From Pavona decussata (taxonomy: Eukaryota): a DNA stretch of 64,000 bases. Below, piece by piece: positions 38,230 through 38,285 of this stretch (its first letter is position 1; each line of letters opens with the position of its first letter). Made by a program: the position numbers and the translations under genes. The notes under the pieces were generated by a model that saw only the letters and a program-made list of their open reading frames with translations, was not told the origin of the DNA and did no database searches. The DNA lies in the NCBI GenBank assembly GCA_977016875.1, contig CDRNST010000161.1, positions 1,798,001 through 1,862,000 on the forward strand. The letters run 5' to 3'.

Positions 38230-38285
38230 GCTGCAACCGTGGACAGCTGTTTCGTTCTTATTGGAACTCGTCAGCACGGTGTAGC
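38230..38285 (-). ncRNA. Type I hammerhead ribozyme with an intact core; predicted cleavage after GUC, between 38242 and 38241
   Basis: GCUAC-ACCGUG-CUGACGA-GUUC(CAAUAA)GAAC-GAAA-C(AGCU)G-UC^-CACGGU-UGCAGC: 6-bp stem I with an internal loop, 4-bp stem II, short stem III with a palindromic loop. Confidence 0.92.

Follow-up and report, generated by a model that had tools for sequence, protein, structure and literature searches.

A type I hammerhead ribozyme between C-type lectin exons of Pavona decussata, probably carried by a truncated copy of a 505-nt non-coding retrozyme

The hammerhead motif and its setting between lectin exons

The window analysed here is a 64,000-nt stretch of the genome of Pavona decussata (GenBank assembly GCA_977016875.1, contig CDRNST010000161.1, positions 1,798,001 to 1,862,000 of the forward strand). 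Two C-type lectin exons in this window (39614-39937 and 31206-31520) share 72% protein identity in tblastn, and a hammerhead motif is located between them, within an insertion of 304 nt (Table 1). The original prediction had placed the motif between lectin paralogues, on the strand that reads toward the intact lectin; both statements stand, since the insertion and both lectin exons are all on the minus strand. The stop codon of the upstream exon precedes the insertion by ~1.25 kb, and AATAAA poly(A)-like signals (39514 and 39454) are likewise located upstream of it, by more than 1 kb.

Table 1. Positions of the hammerhead, the inserted copy, its junctions and the related features (positions in the window unless a locus is named; u, position in the 505-nt unit)
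Feature	Position	Strand	Basis
Type I hammerhead core, u288-332	38236..38280	-	Rfam RF00163, covariation, identical copies
Extended hammerhead, with outer stem I CUGC/GCAG past the UAC/U bulge	38231..38287	-	MFE fold, covariation
5'-truncated copy of the putative retrozyme, u202-505	38063..38366	-	98-100% identity, mapped onto L029:996-1500 (-)
3' tail of the unit (u391-486), PLE-related	38082..38177	-	~66% identity to 8/12 PLE loci
Target-site duplication, at the element 3' end	38055..38063	.	Flank comparison; single copy at C19
Target-site duplication, at the element 5' side	38374..38382	.	Flank comparison; single copy at C19
7-nt filler at the 5' junction, neither element nor target	38367..38373	-	Flank comparison
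C-type lectin exon with stop codon, upstream of the insertion	39611..39937	-	Pfam Lectin_C, E 2.9e-9
Paralogous C-type lectin exon	31206-31520	-	tblastn
Putative minimal hammerhead-like cores in PLE tails	L063:1925-1955, L070:1899-1930, L072:1968-2000 and equivalents		By eye

All of the sequencing runs used in this study are Logan contigs, for which the label RNA is a guess and which give no read starts, ends, strand or circles. Spliced RNA-like contigs from two studies match the minus strand at 36000-37008, with GT..AG introns at 36109-36821 and 36612-36821; they point to an unannotated transcript between the lectin copies, which is apparently non-coding or UTR. At 37002-37836 and 40676-41000 the contig depth is very high in all four runs (up to ~10^5 in run X15), which marks further high-copy repeat families on either side of the insertion. 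A segment of 280 bp at 39950-40229 is 97% identical to 29318-29597. The lectin exons, for which 39725-39948 pairs with 31308-31531 at 86%, are not colinear with this match. The 280-bp segment, which abuts the upstream lectin exon, marks a duplication breakpoint or is a further mobile element, and it may account for the truncated look of the upstream lectin copy. A near-perfect inverted repeat of 31 nt (97%, 3-nt loop) at 42815-42879 and two longer foldbacks at 41946-42047 and 43531-43688 give sub-threshold hits to plant miRNA models; these are probably MITE-like hairpins. An ORF of 267 aa on the minus strand at 43718-44521 matches the Major Facilitator Superfamily (E 1.6e-8).

An intact type I hammerhead had been predicted from the letters of the sequence, and a search with Infernal models had been proposed. 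In a cmscan of the 64-kb window, the minus strand at 38280-38236 matched Rfam RF00163 (Hammerhead_1) with 39.4 bits (E 1.7e-6), above the gathering score of 34 and over the full model (positions 1-45 of 45), and each core part listed in the prediction was found. With the Rfam model no second hammerhead appeared in the 64-kb window, nor at permissive thresholds over 30-47 kb. The core on the minus strand is complete (CUGACGA, GAAA and GUC). Stem II is formed by GUUC and GAAC with the loop CAAUAA, stem III consists of two base pairs (AC/GU) closing AGCU within the palindrome ACAGCUGU, and stem I (ACCGUG/CACGGU, 6 bp, with an outer 4 bp) is open, as defines type I. Cleavage is predicted after the C at 38242, i.e., between 38242 and 38241, in agreement with the site given previously. 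The UAC/UGCA internal loop formerly drawn in stem I was not recovered; past stem I, the MFE fold has a helix CUGC/GCAG after an asymmetric bulge, in which UAC faces a single U. By analogy with related hammerheads, this UAC bulge probably engages loop II (CAAUAA) in a tertiary contact.

For covariation, 18 distinct hammerhead variants were taken from loci of the same genome. Among these variants, 94.4% of the cells are paired in the named structure and 8 of the 17 pairs show two-sided changes. The covariation score was reached by none of 500 shuffles, and in a control with slid partners the pairing collapsed to 25-41%. Stem II occurs as UU/AA, AG/CU, AC/GU and CC/GG and stem I in three forms; in the outer stem I helix, 3 pairs are changed on both sides. 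The hammerhead motif is thus real and exceeds what chance would give, and structural constraint acts across the hammerhead families of this genome.

The 505-nt family and the anatomy of the inserted copy

The insertion that contains the hammerhead comprises u202-505, the 3' portion of a non-coding repeat whose unit is 505 nt. Using 38000-38420 as the query, we searched the assembly from which the window is taken (602 Mb, 1180 contigs). The first look gave 902 candidates, and of these at least 83 were scored as places with 98-100% identity, all covering only 38063-38366. An Rfam family search of the assembly showed that many contigs carry the identical hammerhead with 39.4 bits, and among the fetched loci 82 other hammerheads are identical to the core in the window. 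A genome-wide BLAST search for tandem arrays, suggested in the original prediction, detected arrays with a 505-bp period on contigs C486, C130, C326 and C6, with real DNA and no gaps as the intervening sequence; the array on C486 has at least 11 units. The arrays are demonstrated by BLAST, the period of 505 nt being above the 500 limit of Tandem Repeats Finder. The hammerhead had been described as a solo copy with neither a tandem partner nor an ORF of a Penelope-like element (PLE) in view. This is accurate within the window, but not genome-wide, where many tandem arrays contain this hammerhead and the unit has a PLE-related tail.

As a ruler for mapping, a natural full unit (L029:996-1500, minus strand) was numbered u1 to u505, and 60 loci were mapped onto it. 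The hammerhead is found at u288-332, with the predicted cut after u326. Nearly all copies have their 3' end at u505, and their 5' ends are scattered (u41, u55, u59, u74, u80, u89, u93, u111, u118, u160, u191 and, in the window, u202); the window copy is the shortest among the copies examined. Longer insertions begin with a truncated unit, after which come 1 to more than 10 full units, and many loci have a second truncated copy, inverted and placed head-to-head. The insert lengths in the family are continuous, from 0.6 to more than 3 units. Within 30-nt flanks, direct repeats, mostly of 8-12 bp, abut most of 20 copies, and 1-6 nt of the start of the next unit (TAC...) are often present between u505 and the duplication. 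Thus, the template RNA has to have extended past u505. At first all hits began at query position 55, which suggested 38366 as a common 5' boundary; this was an artefact of the truncated query, and the full unit gives varied 5' ends. A second recurrent 3' end near u416-425, which departs from the common end at u505, was seen in L028-L030, L043, L048, L051, L056, L057 and L060. The surroundings of u419/u420 resemble the u505/u1 junction, and the stretch u420-505 has the look of a short duplicate, inside the unit, of the unit ends.

At the locus in the window, the inserted copy is flanked by a target-site duplication of 9 bp (AAATCGGGG on the plus strand), and base 38063 is assignable either to the element end or to the duplication. 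When the flanks were searched in the assembly, one further place was found, on contig C19. The left flank matches C19 at 1604895-1605117 with 93% identity and the right flank at 1604667-1604902 with 88% identity, on the same strand and contiguously, with an overlap of 8 nt that is the exact overlap of the two queries. This paralogous locus has the target sequence once and is a precise empty site. In run X15, one contig connects 38054 with 38374, and 9 letters fit either side of the joint, which skips 319 nt, i.e., the element of 303 or 304 nt, the 7-nt filler and one 9-nt copy of the duplication. We have withdrawn the reading of this contig as an empty allele, and hence as an insertion polymorphism, as the empty C19 paralogue, 88-93% identical, could be its source.

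The family forms long tandem arrays, such as that on C486, and a piece of satellite moved by recombination, or an assembly error, might leave an isolated copy without retrotransposition. However, the duplication of precisely 9 bp and the exact empty paralogous site argue against this, as does the pattern across loci, in which the 5' end is variable and the 3' end is fixed; we find such an origin scarcely credible. The window copy differs from many other copies by ~1 base in 304. Together with the target-site duplication and the empty paralogous site, this near-identity leads us to read the copy as a young solo insertion of a retrozyme. Of the two possibilities offered in the original prediction, a young solo insertion or a retained cis-element, the former is therefore favoured by the duplication, the empty site and the low divergence, and the latter, considered below, is unsupported. 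As a member of its family, the window copy is ordinary for this genome.

Relation to Penelope-like elements and the proposed route of insertion

The 505-nt unit has a GC content of 45.7%, and its longest reading frame, also on a dimer, is 112 aa. No ORF with reverse transcriptase (RT) and GIY-YIG, by which an autonomous PLE is recognized, is present in the unit, and no RT or GIY-YIG/endonuclease ORF was found near the window copy within 32-45 kb of the window. Elsewhere in the genome there are at least 933 GIY-YIG candidates, with ORFs of up to 1041 aa, often in head-to-head pairs, and one ORF of 481 aa has RVT_1 and GIY-YIG together, which is a Penelope-like architecture. Beside the loci of other hammerhead variants (L031-L042), no RT ORFs were found; those loci have just host domains and one LINE endonuclease.

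For comparison with PLEs, twelve loci of 3.2 kb were used. Positions u390-486 of the unit align with 8 of the 12 at 64-69% identity. In L061, L063, L066, L070 and L072, where the orientation is consistent, the unit aligns with the 3' tail that comes downstream of the GIY-YIG ORF, and the PLE copies lose their mutual resemblance at the exact column of the retrozyme end. In L064, L065 and L067 the match lies upstream of a partial ORF and in the opposite orientation; these reversed matches possibly come from head-to-head copies. The local alignment score of the tail was 25, and 500 dinucleotide shuffles gave 11.7 +/- 1.5 with a maximum of 19. A link to PLEs is most likely, as suggested by the identity of ~66% over ~100 nt and the anatomy of the insertions. 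In the PLE tails, ~155 nt before the element end, we noticed a minimal hammerhead-like core (CUGAAGA, a 6-bp stem II, GAAA, UAUA and GUA). We do not claim this core as a hammerhead; it has no convincing stem I and is unscored by Rfam, which at E <= 0.1 found no canonical hammerhead in the 12 PLE loci. In L061, a PLE copy has beside it a tRNA-like sequence (49.6 bits) that occurs twice, identically and inverted, at 314-386 (minus strand) and 634-706 (plus strand).

It has been proposed that retrozymes derive from PLEs as non-autonomous elements, the sequence relationship having been demonstrated in Xenopus frogs and not in corals (bioRxiv 10.64898/2026.07.22.740005). Like the PLEs described there, the present family has tandem and head-to-head insertions, variable 5' truncation and duplications of variable length. 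Furthermore, its 3' tail is related to the tail of a co-resident element with RT and GIY-YIG. Such similarities might also be expected if the inserted sequence were a piece of an autonomous PLE's terminal repeat (pLTR) and no separate non-autonomous family existed: the tail resembles that of the PLEs and ends at the same position, and head-to-head and tandem structures are typical of PLEs. However, the similarity to PLEs is ~66% and is confined to u391-486, the 505-nt units repeat directly with no ORF between them, and neither the unit nor the neighbourhood of the window copy has the ORF that a PLE contains. Furthermore, the core in the PLE tails is a different and minimal one. We thus regard the origin from a terminal repeat as very improbable.

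The hammerhead is very probably the ribozyme of a non-autonomous and non-coding metazoan non-LTR retrozyme, and the window copy an insertion that stopped early and was dead on arrival. In this explanation, we infer from the anatomy and the literature that the hammerhead cleaves, that circular RNA is formed and that a PLE supplies the mobilising enzyme. In full tandem copies, the hammerhead of each unit would cut the transcript, and the cut units would be ligated to highly self-paired circular RNAs of ~505 nt. These circles would then be copied into DNA by target-primed reverse transcription. The RT/GIY-YIG enzyme for this step would most likely come from a PLE whose 3' tail is mimicked by the unit, so that reverse transcription would start at the PLE-like tail. 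In the event seen in the window, synthesis would have started at the fixed 3' end u505 and stopped at u202, producing 304 nt with one intact hammerhead. It would have left the 7-nt filler and the 9-bp target-site duplication in a TE-rich spacer between tandem lectin paralogues.

An internal start on circular or multimeric RNA is suggested by the fixed 3' end that is not the cut site, the bases of the next unit, the continuous insert lengths and the PLE-like tail. The 505-nt family offers a clean case for the movement of animal retrozymes, with a fixed 3' end that does not coincide with the cut site of the ribozyme. The idea of internally started reverse transcription is already in the literature, and the value of the present case is corroborative.

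Folding, comparison with known hammerheads and transcription

The full unit has a predicted minimum free energy of -194.3 kcal/mol, compared with -144 +/- 6.7 for shuffles (z -7.5), and its predicted fold is rod-like and branched, with long-range pairing of ~u111-130 with ~u375-395. In the fragment present in the window the left arm of the rod is absent, and the energy is the same as that of shuffles (z -0.08). The MFE fold of this fragment disrupts the hammerhead, and the centroid retains stem II and part of stem I; the activity of the fragment as a monomer is thus uncertain from the folding model. Because it has a single cleavage site and lacks half of the rod, the window copy cannot yield a circle of unit length.

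Newt-type hammerheads have a helix III of 1 bp and are dependent on dimers. The hammerhead of the window resembles those of newt satellite 2 and of Schistosoma Sm-alpha in its type I topology, in the combination of loop II with a bulge in stem I and in the short palindromic helix III, which could pair between two molecules. Unlike the newt type, it has a 2-bp helix III with a tetraloop, the invertebrate form that would be expected to cleave well alone. A helix III of 2 bp capped by a tetraloop is the norm in invertebrates, and a single hammerhead motif of the coral Acropora millepora cleaves efficiently, with a kobs of ~0.8 per min (PMC7229834). By this analogy, a dimer would not be needed for cleavage of this hammerhead form.

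The metazoan non-LTR retrozymes described by Cervera & de la Pena in 2020 are non-coding, low-GC tandem repeats with type I hammerheads, and include those of A. millepora, whose units are 220-245 bp and are found as dimers up to 62-mers (PMC7229834). Animal retrozymes give linear and circular RNAs and have duplications of more than 4 bp (PMC7229834). The present family is likewise non-coding, tandem and below 50% GC, with a type I hammerhead in each unit and, by analogy, a contact between loop 1 and loop 2. It also shares with them the duplications of more than 4 bp and a stable self-paired full unit, and it occurs in RNA-like contigs. The family differs from the kind of retrozymes in PMC7229834 solely in the host and in the unit length of 505 nt, as against 220-245 nt in A. 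millepora. The locus in the window, unlike tandem retrozymes, is a single 5'-truncated copy of 304 nt.

Martick et al. in 2008 reportedly found that the mRNAs of rodent C-type lectins (Clec2) carry, as a conserved part, a discontinuous hammerhead in their 3' UTR, and the cis-regulatory interpretation below is modelled on this case. As in Clec2, the hammerhead of the window lies on the sense strand, downstream of the coding sequence of a C-type lectin; unlike that of Clec2, it belongs to a fresh transposon copy well past the stop codon and beyond the poly(A)-like signals, and has no sign of conservation. One alternative is that the solo hammerhead has been exapted as a cis-element that would cut minus-strand read-through between the lectins, as a co-transcriptional terminator or insulator. 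If so, the cut at 38242/38241 would uncouple the lectin paralogues, and this would be a new insulator in which a ribozyme was delivered by a transposon, reminiscent of the hammerhead in the rodent Clec2 3' UTR. The hammerhead is intact and shares its strand with both lectin exons, a spliced minus-strand transcript is present further downstream (~36000-37008), and single hammerhead motifs of the invertebrate type are able to cleave (PMC7229834). However, more than 80 other copies are almost the same as the window copy, and the intactness of the hammerhead thus reflects youth and not selection. The paralogous site on C19 is without the insertion, the poly(A)-like signals precede the insertion by more than 1 kb, and the window fragment has no special fold stability. 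Furthermore, among the Logan contigs, with the RNA label guessed, no RNA-like contigs cover either flank of this copy; the contig depth is 0 at 37837-38003 and ~2-3.5 at 38505-38671. We therefore consider exaptation very unlikely, and the apparently isolated ribozyme beside immune-type lectin genes is better explained as transposon debris.

Runs X1 and X3 are probably RNA, since they have GT..AG joints on the minus strand and no depth on unique non-exonic bins. In these two runs, contigs of the element have depths of 146 and 182, as compared with 14-40 for neighbouring exons, and loose contig ends at 38063 continue into u1. From these contigs, the 505-nt family seems to be transcribed as multimers or circles. 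In run X16, which is labelled organism B, the same family is present at ~99.6% identity together with the u505|u1 junction, and one contig lies at 38063-38342 of the window; this may reflect a close relative, a relabelled sample or a recent sharing of the element.
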